Origin: Oopsacas minuta
Lineage: Eukaryota > Animalia > Porifera
Direction: 5' to 3'
Length of the DNA: 64,000 bases
NCBI GenBank assembly: GCA_024704765.1
Contig: JAKMXF010000233.1
Coordinates: 62,001-126,000 of the forward strand
Of this stretch, positions 4,960 to 25,928 are shown one piece after another; the first letter of the stretch is position 1; the number at the start of each line of letters is the position of its first letter. Under the pieces are notes generated by a model that had not been told where the DNA came from, ran no database searches, and worked only from the letters and a program-made list of their open reading frames with translations. The position numbers and the translations under genes were made by a program.

Positions 4960-7191
4960 ATTGTCTCTCCTATTTTAATGTTTTATTCTTGTATGTAGCT
5001 GCCTATTTTACACGCTAGACTGGTCGTTTTATTTTGAATCATGGCAGATTTCTCTATTTTTGAATGTACACGGAATTAACTGATAAGAATAATAAACATG
5101 TAATATATTTTGTTAGAGATGTTCGGGTAGTTTTCTAGAAACTGATAGGGAAGCTGCTACAGTCAGCTCCCGTTATATCGAATACGGATATACCGAAGTC
5201 AGAAACTGTACAATTTTAGCCCCAAACTAAACCATCTAAGTTCACATAACTAGGAAGCACAATTTTTACTTCAATAATGAGATACTAGAATAGGTACATG
5301 AGGCGAAGGTAGTTATGCTCCATCATAGGGTAGTTAATAAATTACAAGTTTGAAGTTTCTAATTACCAGGGTCCTGTAACGCTATAAATGGTCAGAATGG
5401 CATAACTGGTTCGGGGTGGAACAACTATGGCCGACATCAATTATAAGCAATATTCTTAACAAATGGAGGTAGTTAGGCATCCAGCAGGCCTGAAATTCAT
5501 CCATAGTAAATTTCATCTATACAACTCAATAGAGAACTGAACACAACAAACGAATATCATAAACTGATTCGATAAGCGACTAGATATTGCTACCAGATAC
5601 AAGCAAGAGACACTACGACAAGATAGAGTCAACTTGTTTAAGGGACCAGTTATGGCATGACAGACCTTATGATATTATATCTTCATGTGTTGCTCTCTAT
5701 TAGGAAGTTTTGAATTTCTACATTTGGCTAGAGGGACGAAGTACAAATATTTGAAACGGTTGTAAAACCTGTCCGTAAAATTTGTTTAAGATCAGTTGAA
5801 TTTAGCTTGTTTTTGGCATGAAATGGGTGACTAATAAAATATTTACCCACCAGAGGGCAAAATTATGTTCATTTCGTTATGAATCACTGATATAACTTCT
5901 ATTGCACCAGGAAATTAAAGTGATAAGGTTATTAAATACTACACACCAATTGGATTGCCAAATGCTGGTCAGACCAGCGTTTAACACAAAAATATGTATT
6001 TTCTCAATTATATTCGTAACGATTAATAATTCTAACAACGAGGGCGCTTCCCTTGCGAGCATTGTGTCCGCATGTAACTCAGCAGGTCATGCCTTGAATT
6101 CTTTATACGAACACAAATATTTACATATAAGTACAGTGGATCTCATTTATTATCATAAAAAGTTAAAATCTAAAACCATTTTCGTTACTTCTTGTACTTA
6201 AACACTTGGTTAAAGTCATATTGCGTAATGTCATATCCCGGATATTGTCATCAAAATGTGGTCAGATTTGGTATCCTTTCCGAATAATATGATATAATTG
6301 AACTTGAATCCAGTTTGAAGATTAATAGTATTAGTCTATTAGAAGGAAACACTTGAAGATATATTGAGTATAATTGAACAGTGTGAACAAACTCTTTTGC
6401 ATATAGTTGTGTCTACATGTATTGCAATTTAGTACTGAACACGTACACACATACTCCGTACACTACGTATACGAATTGGATTCCCATATTATCCCTGATA
6501 ATGTCACATTCGCATGAGAAGTATGAAATAATCCGGGAAACTTATTTCCCGGATTATGTCATAAAACACTCATGCACGAGAAATGTGATTTTAAGCGGGA
6601 TCCAATGTAACCTGAAAGGGCGAAATTTGAAATCAGCGTACCTCAATACCCCAGGATATTCATTGAAACCAAGTTTCTGAGACTTCTTTAGCAAATTGTT
6701 TACTTTTTATTCATAAAAACAAATTAATATTACTCCAGTTAATACGAAAGTGTGATTGAAACATGTTTCAATGATGATTTTAATGCAATTCTGGAATTAA
6801 ATAAAATATTTCAAAAATTAATGGCCTGTTTATTCGGACCCCTAAACTATAGGCCGGTCCGAACAGACCTCGAACCTGGGCCAGGATTGCGACCTCTAGC
6901 TGGACCCCCAGAATGGGTACGTTTACGCCTATGCGTTTAATGCCTTTTCAATGAATATAAATTTGATTAATGCCAATTTCGACGCTCCTTTTGTGCCCAT
7001 CTTAACGTGTCAATTGTTTGTGCATAGGCTACCAACGAATTGAGATTTGGACTGATCAAAATATCAAATTGTATGCGTGTAAGATGTAATATACTACTGT
7101 AATATATGGAATATATTCACCATTCTTTCAACTGGGTCAATGCTTTTCTGATTAGCTAGCTTGTAAAATTATCAAAATTTGTGCCTGGTGA

Positions 7192-8396
7192 ATGGCTACT
7201 GCAGAAATTGGTTTGAACATTGAAGGTTTAGACAGATACGATGCTCTGTCTCAACAGATACAAGAGACTTTCTTAGAGTTCCACTCTCTATTGGATAGGA
7301 AACGGATCCTACTTCTAGAGAGGGTTAAATATATGAAAGACCTTAATTTTAAGTATTTAGACCTGAGTAAGGCACTAAAACAGCTGGAAGACATTAAGAG
7401 TGCTACAAATGAAATATTGACAGAGAACTTAATAGCAGAGAAGAAAGGACAAGTTGTCAGTTTATTGGATGATAATATTGCAAATTTAGAGAGAGAGAAA
7501 GCCGATTTATTTCCCTATTATTCGATTTTCAATTCATGTCTAATTCTGTAGAACTAATAAATAGTATTAACAAGATTCACTTGGGAAATTGTGGAGTGAA
7601 TGAATTTAGCCATAGAAGAGAGCCAATTCTTATGAAAGGAAAAAGAGGAGTTGTAGAAGGAGAAATTGCAAGTCCTCGTGGAGTAGCTGTTGATAAAGGA
7701 TATGGTCTCATTTATATTGTAGATTTTTTCACCAAAATAGTTTCCATCTACACTCTTGAAGGAGATTTTCTGAAAAGCTTTGGTCGAGGGATATTACATG
7801 ATCCTCATGGTATCTGTCTATCTGAAGAGTTTGTGTTTGTTACTAATAGAGGCACTAATTCTATTACCAAATTCCTAAAATCTGGACATTTGGTTCACGA
7901 TTCGAAATACGCAAACCCAGGATTACAACTATCTCTTCTGAGCAGTTTATGTACTCACAATAAGTATGTATATGTTTGTAATAGAGCAAAACATAGAATT
8001 GAATTATTCAATTGTGATCTTTTATTTATAAAAAGCTTCGGTCAAAGAAGGTTTCATTGTCCTGAAGATATTAAAATCAATAACGATGTGATTTTTGTAG
8101 TAACTCAATCCGAACAGACAATCTATGCATTCAGCACAGATCTTGAATTTATCTCTACTATTTCCTTAACTGGACAGAATATTTCTATAGCGTTCTTCTT
8201 CACTATTGACTTGAATAGTAACTTTATATTCAGTGATTTTCATGCAGGCAGATTAGAGGTATTCTCTTCATCAGGTGAACACATTGATTCACTCGGAGAT
8301 AATTATTTGTCATTTCCAGGGGGAATTTCCATGGATGGTAACAACAGAATTGTAACAGTTTCGCAGTCTGATATCAATTCCATACAAATATACTAA
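7192..8396 (+). CDS. Coiled-coil + NHL-repeat (TRIM-NHL-like) protein split by a 2-bp frameshift; pseudogene or assembly error
   Basis: ORF 7536-8396 has NHL beta-propeller repeats (SPRGVAVD, DPHGICL, FPGGISMD). ORF 7192-7551 is helical. Removing one GA from (GA)5 at 7489-7498 gives a single frame ...NLERESRFISLLFDFQFMSNSVE... Confidence 0.8.
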
Positions 8397-8937
8397 CTAT
8401 TTTTAATAAGTGAATTTTTGAACTCATTTTCTTATCTAATTACGCTGATTAACATGGAATGCGTGAATAATTTTAGTTACCCCATAATATTACTTACTGA
8501 TTATGTATAAATCGCTTCATGTTATTACACATTTTTTTGCCCAACCCATAAAGATTGGGGCAACTATTATAGAATTTTATGTTGATGTAATTACAGGTAA
8601 ACCTCCGAAATGCGACACCTTTGGGAGCAGCGCTTGTGGCGGATCTTCCGAGTGGAGGTTGCTCAAATACGTATAGCAATAAAGTATCATAGATTATCAA
8701 TAATTATCGATATTGAATTTTTAACTACGCAGGCAGTAAAATGTGGATTACGCAATCTGTGAGCAAAGAATTATGCATATATTTGGAAAAAATGCAAATA
8801 AATTCTTTCCTGACGGGGTACAAATTTTGGGGATAAACTGCTGTCTTCCATAAATCTAAAACACAAATACTTATTAAGTTAATAGCAAACATACTTATAC
8901 AGCAATGAGAATTACAAATTCTGGAATTAAACAGTTG

Positions 8938-15280: not shown

Positions 15281-17716
15281 TCAGTTTGATACATAAAAGT
15301 CCCCAATAGGCGAGATTTCATCTTTCTGTATCCAATCCTCGGACTGATAGAGCACCATTAGGGAGTCAATCTGACTCAAACTCCTCTTACCAACATATAT
15401 CATTTCATCTGTCCCAACATCTTCATCAAATTTATATTTTTTCATCATCTTCTTGCTTATGCTAACAATAACGGTATATGAGTCGCCTAGTGTAGTTGAG
15501 AGCTTTTTATAGAGTTCAAGTACAAAAGCTGCTGCAACATTTGTGACAATTAAGACCACAAACAAATAGTAGAATATGAAGAACAAGTAAGAATATACGC
15601 TAGTAACTGCAACAAAACCGTCTGCAATAGTACTCCAGCTTTTGCCGGTCATCAGAATAAATAGAGTTATGAATGAATAGAAGATATCGTCAAAATTAAT
15701 CAAATAGTACAATCCTTGTGGTTCGGATTGAAGATCGTACATCTTCCCACATTTGCTGTTTAACTGAGGTATTCCTCTTGAATTAAAACTACACGACTTC
15801 AACTTACCCGCGTATAAAAACATGCCAATGATAGCATACACATAGAAAGCAAGGAAGAGTGACAGAAAGAACCGCATGAGGTCAGGAATACTCAAGACAA
15901 TAATCGAGAATAAACGCCGGAAACTCTTTCTTGCATTCAATATTCTCAATAGATGGAGTGTTCTGATTACGATGAGAAATGTAACAAATTGTACTTCATA
16001 AGGTGTGGGAAACAAAGACAGAAACGAGAGTAGAATAGTACACACTAAAATAACAAAATCCCAAAAATACCATTTCTCTGTGAAATAGTAAAATGGACCA
16101 AATCCCAATATCTGAGAAGAAAACTCAAATATGTAGAAAGGCAGAAACACAATAGCCCAGTATACAATTTTATGATCATTAATCAGATCAGTGGGATTAT
16201 GATAGATTATGGTACCGCAAAATATCCCGATAAAGTTGATGAAAATCACTGAGTTCATGAAAAATTGAAAAAGTTCAGAAGAAACTAGCAAGAAAGCATA
16301 TGTCGATAATCTTCTTAATCGCAAGATTTGGATCATATTGTGCCATACTTTGCTGAGATTTGTAAGGTCAGATCTTCGCCATTTCATTGACAGGACATTT
16401 GACAGCTGTTTAAATTCTTTCCAACTTAAATTTTGATTGTTATGACGGTCCAAGACTTTGAACATGAGTAGACACTGTTTCTCAGATATTGTCTTTGTCA
16501 AAGATACCATTACACGTCTAAACAGTGAATAATCCCATCCGGATGGAGAGAACTGAGTGCCTAAATTGTAAGCGCGTTGCAAGCACGTTCTACGATACTC
16601 AAGCAATATTTTCAACCTCTCCTTTTCAAGTTTGTTAAAATGATCTTTGACAACTGCAAGCAAAATATTAGTTAGAACATAGACTCCGAATGTTAGAAAA
16701 GGAATAAATGCGAGTGAAACTAGAATATTTTGCTCTAAAGAAGGCAACATGATACCAGGGAAATTAACTTTAGTAGAAAGTTCGAATATTGTGATGAATG
16801 TGTCACTGAAGGAACTAAAATCATCACTATCATAACCCCACATGAGATGATAAGTCAGGAATGAGAAAATACTTACGTAAAATATGTACAGAATATAGAG
16901 ATCTAGAATACTGCGGATGGAGTTAAATAATTGTTTCATAACACTGCGGATATTTCTATTGCGGTGAGAAGTGAGGAATATAATTGGTCGAAAAACTCTC
17001 AACAAACGGTTATCACAGTAACTAGGTATTGTCAGAGCGAGAATGAAATCGATAGTCACAAAGATAACACCAATCAAACGCAAAAATGTTGTTTGATGTC
17101 GCAAAAATCGTTTAGCCCCCAACCAGGAATATCTTAGCACAAGATCAATCACGAAATATACAATAAGTATGGATTCTAGTATCGATGTAATGATAAAAAA
17201 CTCTGACTCATGAGGGAGGAATAACTCGGTCAAAGGCGGTTCGAAACAGGTCAACAACAAGAGTAGTACACACATTAGCAAATCAAAATAATACACGATT
17301 GGATGGTATATTATGTCATATGCTCGTTTGCCATTTTTACTCCATGGCTGGTACTTTGGATTAAAATAATTCTGACTTTGATGAACGTATAATGCAATAT
17401 TCTCTATTCTAGAGTTCTGATGCTTTTCTGTTTTTGGGAATATACTCTTTCCTTTTACCTCATAGTTATCCACATAAAGATACTCATCTTCAATGCTATT
17501 TACACGCACCCTATCAACTCTCATACCGACTGGAATACCGCAACTTTCCTCAGAATCAAACCTCAAGGAAGGCAGGTCTAGGGAATTTGCCAAAACATCA
17601 TCCTCCTGATTAATGGGGCTAGGGGCTACGTCATCATTAAAATTTGATGATAAAGGCACAGGTTGGTTCAGGCTCCACTCATTTATCCGGTAAGACTTAT
17701 CAAGTCGAAAAGTCAT
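15281..17716 (-). CDS. Two-pore channel (TPC family), single exon, divergent selectivity filters
   Basis: Two 6-TM repeats; S4-I RLLRVFRP; pore I FELSTKVNFPGIMLP; linker EF-hand-like FKVLDRHNNQNLSWKEF; S4-II IRTLHLLRIL; pore II LINFDDIFYSFITLFILMTGKSW; S6-II NVAAAFVLE. First ATG at 17716. Confidence 0.9.
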   Translation of the reverse strand: MTFRLDKSYRINEWSLNQPVPLSSNFNDDVAPSPINQEDDVLANSLDLPSLRFDSEESCGIPVGMRVDRVRVNSIEDEYLYVDNYEVKGKSIFPKTEKHQNSRIENIALYVHQSQNYFNPKYQPWSKNGKRAYDIIYHPIVYYFDLLMCVLLLLLTCFEPPLTELFLPHESEFFIITSILESILIVYFVIDLVLRYSWLGAKRFLRHQTTFLRLIGVIFVTIDFILALTIPSYCDNRLLRVFRPIIFLTSHRNRNIRSVMKQLFNSIRSILDLYILYIFYVSIFSFLTYHLMWGYDSDDFSSFSDTFITIFELSTKVNFPGIMLPSLEQNILVSLAFIPFLTFGVYVLTNILLAVVKDHFNKLEKERLKILLEYRRTCLQRAYNLGTQFSPSGWDYSLFRRVMVSLTKTISEKQCLLMFKVLDRHNNQNLSWKEFKQLSNVLSMKWRRSDLTNLSKVWHNMIQILRLRRLSTYAFLLVSSELFQFFMNSVIFINFIGIFCGTIIYHNPTDLINDHKIVYWAIVFLPFYIFEFSSQILGFGPFYYFTEKWYFWDFVILVCTILLSFLSLFPTPYEVQFVTFLIVIRTLHLLRILNARKSFRRLFSIIVLSIPDLMRFFLSLFLAFYVYAIIGMFLYAGKLKSCSFNSRGIPQLNSKCGKMYDLQSEPQGLYYLINFDDIFYSFITLFILMTGKSWSTIADGFVAVTSVYSYLFFIFYYLFVVLIVTNVAAAFVLELYKKLSTTLGDSYTVIVSISKKMMKKYKFDEDVGTDEMIYVGKRSLSQIDSLMVLYQSEDWIQKDEISPIGDFYVSN

Positions 17717-19587: not shown

Positions 19588-22260
19588 CTAAAGACGAACA
19601 TCACTAAGCCGTATATCATGAACTTGGAGAAGTCGAGAATCTGAACAGAGCTGAGTTAACAGTTCAAATAATTTCTCTATGCGTAAATCAAATCTCTCCG
19701 CTAAATGATTCATCCGCTCATCCATGGAATCTAGCCTTTGATCCACATTGGTATAGTCTTCATCAAAAGGAAAATCATCAAAAGCGTGGTTAAGCTTTTC
19801 ATTTACAAATTGCTGTGATTGCATGGTGCACAACATCCCCTTTACATCAACCTTTTCATTGAAACTTTTCAAATTTAATTGTTTTATATCTTTTACGCCG
19901 AAATACTCATTCAATTCGTCCTTCCCAATAACGATAGATTCCACGATGTACCATTTTCTTATTCTCTTGAATATGGATATAATAGAGGTTCTCTGTATTT
20001 GAATAATGAAATTGAGTCTATGCCAGGCAAAACTATAATCTGCTCGTTCTTCAAATTTGGAATAGGTATCGGAAAGTTGGGCAATGAATACATTGACGAA
20101 CACGATGACAATTAAGAATAGGAAGGTTAGGTAGATTGTTGTAGACATCCAATTGAGCAAATTGTAAAGATAATTACCGTCCAAGATATTTCCCTGTACC
20201 AGAATCCTAAGCCCCGACAAGAATACCCAGTATACTTGATCAGTAATTCCATATAGGTGTCTAGTTTCCTCAAATAGTGACAAATTTCGGAATCCTTCAG
20301 GTGTTGTTGGCACAAACAATGATATGTGAAATGTGCCAGTAAAGATGCATAGTGTTATTAGGAATAGGATAGCGAATTTGGGTAAATCATCTTTGAGTAC
20401 ATTGTAAAAAATATTTGAATACGGCCCCAAAACAGGTATGAGGACAATCAGTTTAAAGAGACGCATCGCATTAATGAAAAATGCAATGGAAGCAAAGATC
20501 CATTGAATTGGTGATCGAGCAGCACGAAAAATTATTAGAATGAAGAGGGATAGAAGGCCTAATACGTCCCAATAGTTTGAATTGTTTTTGAAATAGTCGA
20601 GGAGAACTCTTATGATGAATATTTTCTTCACTTTCAAAGCTGATCTTTTCAATGTTTCCAAACGGCTCCTTCTATGTACCATTTCAGATTGTCTTTGCCT
20701 TTCCTCTTCTTCTGCATTTCTTACTCTTATCATGCTATGATATGTAAGAATAGATACTCTAAAGAATTCAATGCCCTCGGTAAAGAGGTTTCCTACAAAA
20801 TAGAAAAGCGTGAATAATTCCGCTATGAGCCGTGGGTAATCATGGAGTGATGAAAACATGAGAAAGTGTTCGGAGTCTGGTTCATATGTAGCTAATATTA
20901 GAGAGCTTCCAAGTGTGAATAAGAATAAGGTATATAATGCTAATCTCACACCTAGGATTGCATATCCGTAATTAGACATCTTTCTATCAACTAGGATTCT
21001 AATGGTGCCATGGTATGCAAGCTCGGAACTCCCAGACAGGCTTATGTGTTGCAATAAATCAGTATCGTTGTAGTTAAATCTATCTTCTTTTGGCAATAGA
21101 TTTCCACTGTCTATCTCCAAGTATTTGGTGAGTATCTTCCCTTTTGCATGCTTACCATCTATTTCTTCCGATGGTTCCACCAACATTCGATCAAGCAAGG
21201 CTTTCACCGTTTCAATCAATTTGAATTTCACCAAGTCCACAAATGGGATCTTGAACTTCATCCTGCATTCCTTTATATAGTTTTCACTCGGATAGAGACG
21301 GATACACATAGCAACTGCCTCATCTCTCCTGTTTTCAATCGCTCGTTCCATACAGCTGTACCAATCGTCATTAGTTACCCGAAATGATGCACCATTGGTG
21401 ATTAACTCTTTTATTACGTTTGTATGACCATTTTCACAAGCAATACGAAGTGGAAAGTTACCGTTATGATCTCTCTGATCCAAATTGGCTCTTTGACTCG
21501 CGAGGATTAGTATGTGACTTTCTTTACCGATTCTAGCTGCAATGAGTACAGGTGTTTCTCCGTAGTTGTTGGTTGCATTAATATTAGCTCCCTTCTTGAG
21601 TAGTAAATGTACTATCTCTTCATCAGCATCCTGACAGGCGATGTGAAGGGCAGAATCCCCCATTGAGTTAAAGAAGTTCACTTCTGCTCCATGACACAGT
21701 AACCAGTTTATCGTGTGAATGTAGCCATTCCTAGTCGCGTAGTATAGTGGTGTGTTGTTATCAGCATCTATCCTGTTCAGATCCAAACCGGGTCTATTCT
21801 TCTTCAACTCTTTCAGCACTCTCCATGCTCCAGATTCAGCTGCAGTGTGTGGATGGTAGTTTTCTATTATCTCAGCTCCTGCTTCCAATAGGATACTCAC
21901 TAGTTCTGAGTTATTGTTATTACACGCTATCCACAATGCATTTGTACATTGTCTTTGGAACTGTTCTGAAAATTCTCCCTTTTCTTTCTGCTTTCTGATG
22001 ATCAATCGGACGAGGTTATTCTTATGATAATATACACCTTCTCCTAGTGCATTGATTCTCTCTTTAGAATCGATAGCACGTAAATAATCTGCTCCTGACT
22101 CAATCAATTCAACTAACCTATCCCAGTCTTTGTTTATCATAGCTTTATCATATTCGGAATTACTCCTTGATGAGTTACTAACATCTACAGCATCGTTCTC
22201 AAAATTTACTAACTTGGAACATTCCTCATCGTTTCGCAAATTTGACATATTTAGAGCCAT
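19588..22260 (-). CDS. Ankyrin-repeat TRP channel (TRPV/TRPA-like), single exon
   Basis: About 7 ankyrin repeats (TPLYYA, SALHIAC, TPVLIAA, FPLRIAC), six TM segments, S6 VNVFIAQLSDTY, TRP-helix-like FAWHRLNFII, C-terminal coiled coil. Start could be 22299, 22260 or 22248. Confidence 0.9.
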   Translation of the reverse strand: MALNMSNLRNDEECSKLVNFENDAVDVSNSSRSNSEYDKAMINKDWDRLVELIESGADYLRAIDSKERINALGEGVYYHKNNLVRLIIRKQKEKGEFSEQFQRQCTNALWIACNNNNSELVSILLEAGAEIIENYHPHTAAESGAWRVLKELKKNRPGLDLNRIDADNNTPLYYATRNGYIHTINWLLCHGAEVNFFNSMGDSALHIACQDADEEIVHLLLKKGANINATNNYGETPVLIAARIGKESHILILASQRANLDQRDHNGNFPLRIACENGHTNVIKELITNGASFRVTNDDWYSCMERAIENRRDEAVAMCIRLYPSENYIKECRMKFKIPFVDLVKFKLIETVKALLDRMLVEPSEEIDGKHAKGKILTKYLEIDSGNLLPKEDRFNYNDTDLLQHISLSGSSELAYHGTIRILVDRKMSNYGYAILGVRLALYTLFLFTLGSSLILATYEPDSEHFLMFSSLHDYPRLIAELFTLFYFVGNLFTEGIEFFRVSILTYHSMIRVRNAEEEERQRQSEMVHRRSRLETLKRSALKVKKIFIIRVLLDYFKNNSNYWDVLGLLSLFILIIFRAARSPIQWIFASIAFFINAMRLFKLIVLIPVLGPYSNIFYNVLKDDLPKFAILFLITLCIFTGTFHISLFVPTTPEGFRNLSLFEETRHLYGITDQVYWVFLSGLRILVQGNILDGNYLYNLLNWMSTTIYLTFLFLIVIVFVNVFIAQLSDTYSKFEERADYSFAWHRLNFIIQIQRTSIISIFKRIRKWYIVESIVIGKDELNEYFGVKDIKQLNLKSFNEKVDVKGMLCTMQSQQFVNEKLNHAFDDFPFDEDYTNVDQRLDSMDERMNHLAERFDLRIEKLFELLTQLCSDSRLLQVHDIRLSDVRL

Positions 22261-24018: not shown

Positions 24019-25928
24019 ATGAGGGAAATGGTACAAATTCAAGTTGGACATCATGGAAACCAAATAGGATACAAGGTGAGCTTATTAATATTAGAACTAC
24101 AGTCAAACCTGCCTAACGGGCACCTCTGTATAACGGTCACCTGCACATAGCGGCCACCTAAAAACACTCCTTCCGATTCCAATTATAATGACCTCTCTAT
24201 AGCGGCCACCATTTTTGTCCCTTACTGCCGCTAAAACTGTCTGTGACGGCCACTACCTCTATATAACAGCCAGTTTCTTTATCTAACGACCACTTTATAT
24301 AGTGGTCGCCTCCCACCATAAGGTCTACCTTTGACAAGTCCCTGGGTGACCATCATTAACTGTATTATCTTAAATATCGGTCACTTGTCCTAAAGGCCAA
24401 CTTCTGTATATCACCACCAACAATTTAAAATTACTACCACACTCGTTATAACGGTCAAGCTCTCTATGGCGGCTACTTTTGGCCAGTCTCTTCAGTGGCC
24501 GTTATAGACAAGTTTGACTATATATCAAAATAATCATTAGTATTTATTACATATATAAACTATTGGATACTTTTTGGACACTTTTGCAAACATTAAAAAC
24601 CAAGTTTACCAACAATAACTTCGTGGTACATAAAACTTATAATAATACATAGGTGACCCCCAATGGTAAGTAACCGAATATAATTACTTGTTTATCCCCA
24701 CTAGTTCTGGGAGTTTATTGGAAGTGAACACAACATAGACATAAATGGCATTCCATTACCAAATGATGATCCTTTCGACTCAAAGGTAAGACAAGAACGT
24801 GCCAATATCTACTATAACGAGACAAAAGCTGGAGTATACATACCAAGAACAGTTCTTGTAGATTTAGATCCTAAGTTCTTAATTGCTGGTCCTCTGTCCA
24901 ATCTGATCCCTAAATGCAACATTATTTATGGATATGGTGGGTGTAATAATAATTGGGCGAAAGGTCATTACACAGATGGTGCTGAAATGATAGATACAAT
25001 ACTAGAGGGTATCCGTAGAGAGGTAGAGTGCTGTGATGCTTTACAGGGATTTCAAATCCCTCATTCACTGGGTGGAGGCACAGGTGCAGGCTTAGGTACA
25101 CTTATTATCTCAAAGTTAAGAGAGGAGTATCCTGATCGGTCCATAATATCATTCAGCGTTACACCTTACTCGAATGCAGGCGATTCAGTGGTAGCTCCTT
25201 ACAATGCAATACTAGCACTTCATCAACTTATGGAAAACACTGATCAAACGTTGCTAATTGACAATGAGGCTTTACTTAAACATTCTTACGGACTTGAGAA
25301 AGGTAATTTCAATAATATGAATTCTTTAGTAGCAAGTATGATGTCTGGACTAACCTCTTGCTTTCGCTTCTCCTCTCCTCTCAACTTGAATTTACAAAAA
25401 ATAGGTGTAAAAATGATCCCATTCCCACGCTTGCACTTCTTCATTTCAGCAGTTGCTCCTAACGCATATGAATCAAAAGTAAGCCACAAGCAAACTTCTG
25501 TTGCAGACCTGACTCAACAAATGTTTGTTCCTAATTATTCCCTAACATCATGTGATCCTTGTAAGGGCAAACACCTTGCTACCACTACTCTATATCAAGG
25601 ATTGATTTCAATTAAAGAAATTGAGGATCAATTACGCATCATACAACCCACTGTAAAGTTTGCAAGAGGATGTTCTGAAAATATTACGACAGCCCTGTGC
25701 AGCATTCCCCAAAAGGATCAAGCAATCAGTTCGACATATGTTATTAACTCTACTGCTATAAAGTGTAGTATACTCCGATTATGTGAGGATTTTAAGAAAC
25801 TTTATGAAAGCTCAGCATTTTTACATTCTTACATTGGGGAGGGCATGGATAATATGGAATTTCTCGAAGCTCTTTCAAACTGTGAGGATCTTGTTACTGA
25901 GTACAAACAATATGAACGTTATTTGTAA
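24019..25928 (+). CDS. Highly divergent beta-tubulin-like protein, 426 aa, two exons (24019-24075, 24705-25928)
   Basis: MREMVQIQVGHHGNQIGYK | FWE..., with the intron after codon 19 as in animal beta-tubulins. NNWAKGHYT, HSLGGGTGAGLG, IDNEAL, PFPRLHFF and GEGMDNMEF motifs. No acidic C-terminal tail. Confidence 0.9.
24100..24520. mobile_element. pogo/Tigger-type MITE inside the tubulin intron
   Basis: TA-cagtcaaacct ... aagtttgacta-TA, with internal repeats of the acctct(a/g)ta(a/g)cggccacc type. Confidence 0.7.

Follow-up and report, generated by a model that had tools for sequence, protein, structure and literature searches.

A TPC1-type two-pore channel gene of the glass sponge Oopsacas minuta with a lysine in each selectivity filter

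Few features of the two-pore channel (TPC) family vary as little as the selectivity filters, and a gene in which each filter carries a lysine raises the question of whether such a pore still conducts and, if so, how it discriminates between ions. Here, we analyzed a gene of this kind from the glass sponge Oopsacas minuta (Hexactinellida), located on the minus strand at positions 15281-17716 of a 64,000-nucleotide stretch of contig JAKMXF010000233.1 (positions 62,001 to 126,000; hereafter the window). The gene encodes a divergent TPC1-type two-pore channel and is referred to as the K-type paralog, as distinct from the canonical TPC1 genes that reside on a different contig of the same O. minuta genome. 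This naturally occurring gene, on which selection acts, has changes at all residues known to determine TPC selectivity; with the canonical paralog of the same genome as the control, it amounts to an experiment, already set up by nature, on how a pore discriminates between ions.

The reading frame runs from ATG to TGA over 811 codons without interruption, as a first-pass annotation made from the sequence alone had reported, and the annotation of assembly GCA_024704765.1 carries an identical gene call. Its product bears two Ion_trans stretches (Pfam, E 2.8e-49) and thereby displays the two tandem six-transmembrane (6-TM) domains within some 700-900 residues that define the TPC family. Among solved structures, HMMER ranked mouse TPC1 (6c96, E 1.5e-74) first, ahead of TPC3 (7e-40) and Cav (2e-30); plant TPC1, TPC2, and the four-domain Cav/Nav channels likewise ranked below it. 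An AlphaFold2 (AF2) model of the monomer, built from a 49-sequence alignment, contained both S1-S6 sets (mean predicted local distance difference test score 82.7, predicted template modeling score 0.82), with disorder limited to the N-terminal 92 residues. Its top Foldseek match was 6c96_A (target-normalized TM-score 0.82), and ranks 1-19 were occupied by TPCs throughout. The closest relatives in both sequence and fold are thus solved TPCs and not four-domain Cav/Nav channels, and the initial assignment to the two-pore channels holds. Two further elements of that assignment needed adjustment. The cytosolic linker between the two domains, described at first as EF-hand-like, aligns to the mouse TPC1 linker without gaps and is the gene's most conserved part, whereas its EF-hand_8 match (E 0.005, 17 bits) stays under the Pfam cut-off of 28 bits. 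The S4 arginines, said to be kept, are indeed retained at R237/R240/R243 of IS4 and, with a lysine, at R585/R591/R596/K597 of IIS4, whereas two canonical IIS4 charges are replaced, namely the second by H588 (arginine in 41 of 45 other TPCs) and the fourth by N594 (where mouse and the canonical sponge copies have lysine).

Filter I reads L313-S-T-K316-V-N-F-P-G321 (window 16754-16780) and filter II reads L688-M-T-G-K692-S-W694 (window 15635-15655); both sequences had been read correctly before, at coordinates that were off by 1-3 bases. In gap-free HMMER alignments, T-K-V-N-F-P-G is matched to T-T-A-N-F-P-D of mouse TPC1 and T-G-K-S-W to V-V-N-N-W. K316 (codon AAA at 16769-16771) replaces the second threonine of TTxN and corresponds to T271 of human TPC2 (hTPC2), and K692 (codon AAA at 15641-15643) replaces the asparagine equivalent to hTPC2 N653. 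The changes extend beyond the two lysines, with S693 in place of the asparagine equivalent to N654, T690 and G691 at the positions of V651 and V652, G321 (16754-16756) in place of the luminal aspartate D276, and E312 (16781-16783) where a hydrophobic residue is usual. In the AF2 model, pore I is composed of a helix (303-315), a loop (316-319), and a second helix (320-329), and pore II of a helix (678-690), a loop (691-693), and a second helix (694-704), with K316 and K692 residing in the respective loops. Alignment and monomer model therefore place both lysines at pore-lining filter positions between the pore helices, and a homodimer, as the first-pass annotation had envisaged, would be predicted to present four lysines at the filter; the refuting case named in that annotation, with the lysines lying elsewhere than at the pore, is not borne out. 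The affected positions are well characterized in hTPC2, whose filters are 270-TTANN-274 and 651-VVNNW-655 (PMC11844439). There, the main Na+ site is made up of N653 and N654, whose side chains project into the pore entrance; the transition zone towards the cavity is lined by V651/V652 and T270/T271, and D276 is part of a luminal acidic chain that attracts cations (PMC11844439). No hTPC2 variant with a lysine was encountered in the literature searched.

Such filters are exceptional among TPCs. An exhaustive profile search of representative sequences yielded 10,927 matches at E ≤ 0.001, and among the 72 TPC-length sequences aligned, filter I was nearly everywhere T-T-(A/S/C/V)-N-x-P-D and none besides the K-type paralog had a lysine at the K316 or K692 position. 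Across 45 other TPCs, the K316 position was occupied by threonine in 43, the K692 position by asparagine in 44, and the luminal aspartate position by aspartate in 40. Given this near-invariance, together with the lack of lysine in the other TPC-length representatives, the two lysines are not a matter of chance. The canonical TPC1 patterns, T-T-(A/V/S)-N-x-P-D in filter I and V-N-(N/Q)-W in filter II, are both departed from (T-K-V-N-F-P-G and G-K-S-W). In a wider comparison, 43 columns were at least 85% conserved across the 45 other TPCs, and the K-type paralog keeps 38 of them; the five exceptions are T316K, D321G, F552W, R588H, and N692K. Three of these map to the filters or the mouth of the pore, and another affects an IIS4 gating-charge position. 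A pore-helix glutamate of the E312 type was found in no other TPC sampled, the K-type ortholog described below apart. Closer to home, a protein word search retrieved seven glass-sponge homologs (51-56% identity), all of which read L-S-T-T-V-N-Y-P-D and L-M-I-(V/I)-N-N-W. TTVN and (V/I)NNW are kept in all nine canonical glass-sponge copies, a set that comprises the seven search homologs, two copies on an irregular contig, and the O. minuta tandem pair (two entries being the same gene), and about 55 TPC representatives besides these likewise have no lysine in either place.

The K-type paralog is recovered within the glass-sponge TPC clade at 100% support and hence nests in TPC1 by descent. Its sister in the trees, at 99-100% support, is a single ortholog, L005 (ENA ERZ25072730 ctg54057), the only further K-type relative found in full-length and two piece-wise word searches, the exhaustive representative search, and JGI metagenomes. 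L005 is a 4.7 kb contig at 2x coverage, from a sample whose main sponge stands at about 326x, and its gene appears as three short proteins (P0019, P0011, and P0009), arranged head to tail and jointly spanning the whole gene, which we analyzed apart or joined by X. The frame shifts twice, at single-base indels outside long homopolymers. Over the whole gene, the two K-type sequences share 69% protein and 77% DNA identity, and it is on this DNA identity and the tree that orthology is based. The gene upstream of the L005 TPC differs from the TRP-like neighbor in the window, so that synteny speaks neither for nor against it. That upstream gene (L005:87-1319) encodes a 410-residue protein with a relative in the window at 7219-8393 (+), at 43-46% identity, about 7 kb off and on the other strand, whose called product has only a faint NHL match in Pfam.

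The ortholog separates what is ancestral in the K-type filters from what is not. In its filter I region, F-E-L-T-T-K-V-N-F-P-H, L005 has in common with the K-type paralog the lysine, a glutamate placed four residues ahead of it, and the loss of the luminal aspartate, and these traits consequently predate the split of the two genes. The two IIS4 replacements, arginine to histidine and lysine to asparagine, are shared as well. Filter II of L005 reads L-M-I-G-G-T-W-D, in which the valine-to-glycine change is common to both genes. Thus, the lysine of filter I characterizes the lineage, and K692 is specific to O. minuta. The codons at the two asparagine positions (AAT/AAC in canonical genes, AAA/AGC in O. 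minuta, GGT/ACC in L005) are most simply explained by an N-N ancestor whose asparagines were each replaced independently, by K-S in O. minuta and by G-T in L005; judged from these sequences, the canonical constraint has been lifted from the entire filter II. Sequencing error was dismissed as the source of the lysines: K316 is also present in an independent assembly, and K692 stands among three other changed filter residues. Two other candidate K-type relatives, P0158 and P0159, were of the canonical type instead and lie on a contig that is palindromic and probably misassembled. That contig, L006 (ENA ERZ26869290 ctg355902, 7830 bp), holds several canonical-type TPC fragments in alternating orientation and looks like a palindromic assembly artefact and not a gene cluster.

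The canonical O. minuta TPC1 genes, of the LOD99_1634/1635 type and with one of them among the seven search homologs, form a tandem pair (98% identical) on contig JAKMXF010000166.1 (L002:2696-5143 and 6001-8448), situated between ELP3 and NDUS4 in a synteny common to two other glass-sponge assemblies. Those two sponges have a single TPC1 copy at this site, in place of the tandem duplicate of O. minuta, whose copies differ by a dS of about 0.01, the few differences being concentrated in two places, the IIS1-S2 loop and the region IIS3-S4. The genome paper lists LOD99_1634/1635 as 'Two-pore channel 1', in addition to LOD99_2879 and LOD99_13596, and makes no mention of selectivity filters (PMC10280926). 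The K-type clade lies near the base of the glass-sponge TPCs in the best tree, and its grouping with the O. minuta canonical genes was not rejected by the approximately unbiased test (p 0.21); the duplication may therefore be either old or lineage-specific. A retrogene origin argued from the missing introns was discarded, as all glass-sponge TPC genes seen are equally intronless. As a group, the glass-sponge TPCs are separated from the other animal TPC1s by a very long stem (about 2.3 substitutions per site), and outside their filters even the canonical sponge channels have diverged strongly. Five residues after the filter II tryptophan, for instance, the canonical sponge TPCs carry glutamine or lysine in place of the usual acidic residue, which the K-type copies keep (D699).

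Comparison of the two K-type genes revealed that selection continues to act on them. The pair differs by 0.19-0.21 nonsynonymous (dN) and 0.53-0.65 synonymous (dS) substitutions per site, with dS unsaturated, which gives an omega (dN/dS) of 0.30 by the NG86 method (bootstrap interval 0.24-0.37), compared with 0.065-0.10 for canonical pairs at saturated dS. The dN/dS check proposed at the outset thus yields a ratio that is not near 1: purifying selection acts on the K-type gene, with a strength three to five times below that on the canonical genes and most relaxed in domain II.

On this evidence, the K-type gene is probably a functional, lineage-restricted glass-sponge TPC1 paralog in which the ion pathway is remodeled and the second voltage sensor modified on a TPC scaffold that is kept; going by its sequence, it would most likely pair either with itself or with canonical TPC1. 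On the stem of the lineage, K316 arose together with E312 one helical turn earlier and the loss of the luminal aspartate (G321), along with the valine-to-glycine change in filter II and the two replacements in IIS4 (arginine to histidine, lysine to asparagine), and codon parsimony places the independent replacement of both filter II asparagines later, in each descendant. The subunit would still fold and dimerize as a TPC without the asparagine-based Na+ site, and its permeation would differ from that of canonical TPC1, in that its selectivity among cations or its conductance would be lower or altered. This expectation follows from hTPC2, where mutants and simulations show that loss of the asparagine site and the hydrophobic V-V transition zone abolishes Na+ selectivity, and from plants, where glycine at the N653 position is the non-selective configuration (PMC11844439). 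Spaced i/i+4 at the end of a helix, E312 and K316 probably form a salt bridge that partly neutralizes the lysine, which would make them a compensated pair and not damage.

When the filter II segment was aligned alone, K692 fell on the glutamate or aspartate of the Cav3 EEDD and Cav2.3 EEEE rings, a locus that is also that of the lysine in the Nav DEKA ring. This placement draws on the Cav alignments, established knowledge, and PMC6259924, according to which Nav1 and NALCN bear their selectivity lysine at the high-field-strength locus. In a K-type homodimer, the ring at this locus would read V-K-V-K (V317 and K692), with two more lysines one layer deeper, while a heterodimer with canonical TPC1 would carry an asymmetric V-N-V-K ring with a single lysine, as in Nav1 and NALCN. 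Heteromers are possible given the canonical TPC1 genes in the same genome, and they are documented for human TPCs (PMC3199452). The first-pass annotation had considered a non-cationic pore; since a lysine at the K692 locus is a hallmark of the Na+-selective pores of Nav1 and NALCN, its presence is no argument per se for one.

Several observations weigh against a functional channel with a remodeled pore. K692 is not conserved, being glycine in L005, and the local charge of filter II is opposite in the two genes (K692 in O. minuta, an aspartate directly after the tryptophan in L005). The omega of the K-type pair, several-fold above that of canonical TPC1, is highest in pore II and the second voltage-sensor domain (VSD2), which fits relaxed constraint on parts crucial to conduction and voltage sensing. 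In the tree, the branch leading to the O. minuta gene has about twice the length of its ortholog's (0.34 versus 0.18). Moreover, the two frame breaks of L005 may be low-coverage sequencing errors or mark a real pseudogene, and no transcript-derived copy of the K-type paralog was present among the protein-search matches.

Part of this pattern could be produced by a non-conducting or dominant-negative regulatory subunit, kept for the roles of its voltage sensors, linker, or scaffold, which would silence or modulate canonical TPC1 in heterodimers of the documented kind while its filter drifts and its lysines plug the pore or repel cations. The regional omega values lend this alternative some weight, as pore II and VSD2 are the least constrained (0.47 and 0.39, with VSD1 at 0.33) and the linker (0.18), pore I (0.21), and C-terminus (0.21) evolve slowly, all upper bounds being at most 0.80. 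The independent and different replacement of the filter II asparagines in the two orthologs, with opposite local charge, and the loss of the luminal aspartate, which in hTPC2 serves to attract cations (PMC11844439), point in the same direction. However, the linker and pore I are the most constrained parts of the gene, and both orthologs have retained the S6 helices as well as N318, P320, and the E312-K316 pair of filter I; coupled charges of this kind should not persist in a pore that drifts freely. We consider a regulatory subunit rather unlikely, and a functional paralog with a remodeled ion pathway remains the reading that we prefer.

Less credible still is a decaying redundant duplicate on its way to a pseudogene, with the lysines as incidental damage. 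Its evolution is indeed faster than that of the canonical genes. Of the substitutions polarized by the canonical outgroup, 84 belong to O. minuta and 38 to the L005 branch, and 39 versus 19 of the changes hit sites invariant in all seven canonical copies (p 0.012). The frame breaks of L005 would fit such decay, as would the finding that protein searches detected no K-type gene in six other glass-sponge assemblies that have the canonical gene. The substitutions on the O. minuta branch are nevertheless conservative, with a mean BLOSUM62 score of +0.70; when single-base replacements were drawn at random for the same sites, the mean was -0.25, and 0 of 2000 simulations attained the observed score. 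In addition, stop-creating changes make up about 4.8% of the single-base changes in the K-type paralog, and neutral evolution would have left roughly 35 stops on its branch (0.048 x 2433 x 0.3, with dS assumed to be split evenly), whereas its 811 codons contain none and its 2433 bases no frameshift. An upper bootstrap bound of 0.37 on omega, the 38 of 43 retained pan-TPC residues, and the confident AF2 fold argue against decay as well.

Animal TPCs are usually endolysosomal, and this, the absence of K692 from L005, and a ring without the acidic partners of DEKA make a qualitatively new selectivity, whether as an anion-conducting homodimer or as a Nav1-like single-lysine heterodimer with canonical TPC1, highly improbable. 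In its favor are the position of K692 on the Cav EEEE/EEDD ring, the resemblance of T690-G-K-S-W to the T-x-K-x-W of Nav domain III (for the role of the lysine, see PMC6259924), and the lack of Nav and Kv channels in a species from a group that has action potentials (PMC10280926).

The physiological setting gives the preferred reading, a functional paralog with altered permeation, its wider interest. In the O. minuta genome paper, two-pore, CatSper, and Hv channels were the voltage-gated calcium-channel matches, no Nav and no obvious Kv genes were found, and relatives of the species conduct calcium-dependent action potentials through their syncytia (PMC10280926). With so few voltage-gated channel types in the genome, the TPC paralogs are among the few candidates for the currents of the syncytial action potential. 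One might picture the K-type paralog in an asymmetric heteromer with canonical TPC1 that bears a single lysine, as an independent two-domain route to Nav1/NALCN-like selectivity, or as an anion-conducting homodimer, which could shape or reset the syncytial action potential; we regard this as a long shot.

The features of the K-type paralog are collected in Table 1. Directly upstream of it, at 19588-22260 (-), lies an intact TRP-like channel gene whose 890-residue product combines ankyrin repeats with an Ion_trans domain, which puts two cation-channel genes side by side. A tubulin-family gene of 426 residues (Pfam Tubulin and Tubulin_C) is located further on at 24019-25928 (+).

Table 1. Positions of the K-type paralog and its principal features in the window
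Feature	Position	Strand	Basis
K-type paralog coding sequence, complete, intronless	15281..17716	(-)	811 codons + TGA; contig JAKMXF010000233.1
End of pore helix 1 and filter I, E312-L-S-T-K316-V-N-F-P-G321	16754..16783	(-)	HMMER alignment, AF2 model
EF-hand-like cytosolic linker between the 6-TM domains	16400..16522	(-)	Sub-threshold Pfam EF-hand_8, residues 399-439; omega 0.18, residues 388-480
IIS4 voltage-sensor helix, R585, H588, R591, N594, R596, K597	15926..15964	(-)	Alignment
Filter II and start of pore helix 2, L688-M-T690-G691-K692-S693-W694...D699	15620..15655	(-)	HMMER alignment, AF2 model

Among known channels, the K-type paralog is closest to mouse TPC1 (6c96) and the canonical sponge TPC1, with which it shares two 6-TM domains, a putatively EF-hand-like linker, a conserved C-terminal domain, T315, N318, and P320 of filter I, W694 of filter II, and most of the voltage-sensor charges; the sponge canonical copies are 51-56% identical to it and, like it, intronless. 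Unlike canonical TPC1, it has TKVN in place of TT(A/V)N and GKS in place of VNN, has lost the luminal aspartate (G321), carries a glutamate in pore helix 1 as well as H588 and N594 in IIS4, and evolves at an omega three to five times higher. Human TPC2 offers a homologous pore scaffold whose selectivity-setting residues V651, V652, and N653 (PMC11844439) are changed in the K-type paralog, and all four filter II positions differ (T-G-K-S versus V-V-N-N). Plant AtTPC1, a non-selective cation channel with M-G-N-W in filter II, has lost the asparagine at the N653 position, as have the K-type genes, and L005 carries glycine there exactly as AtTPC1 does (PMC11844439). The O. minuta gene differs from AtTPC1 in having lysine and not glycine at this position, and it does not descend from the plant clade but nests in the glass-sponge TPC1 group. 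With Nav1 and NALCN (DEKA, DKEA, EEKE, and EKEE), it has in common a lysine two residues before the pore tryptophan in a T-x-K-x-W context (PMC6259924); the four-domain matches searched for this motif included few Nav1-type proteins in their top 150. Those channels, however, are four-domain proteins in which one lysine faces two or three carboxylates, whereas the K-type paralog would form a two-domain dimer with a ring free of carboxylates and a second lysine in filter I. The likeness to Nav1 and NALCN is accordingly best described as an analogy in the position of the lysine, not as family membership.

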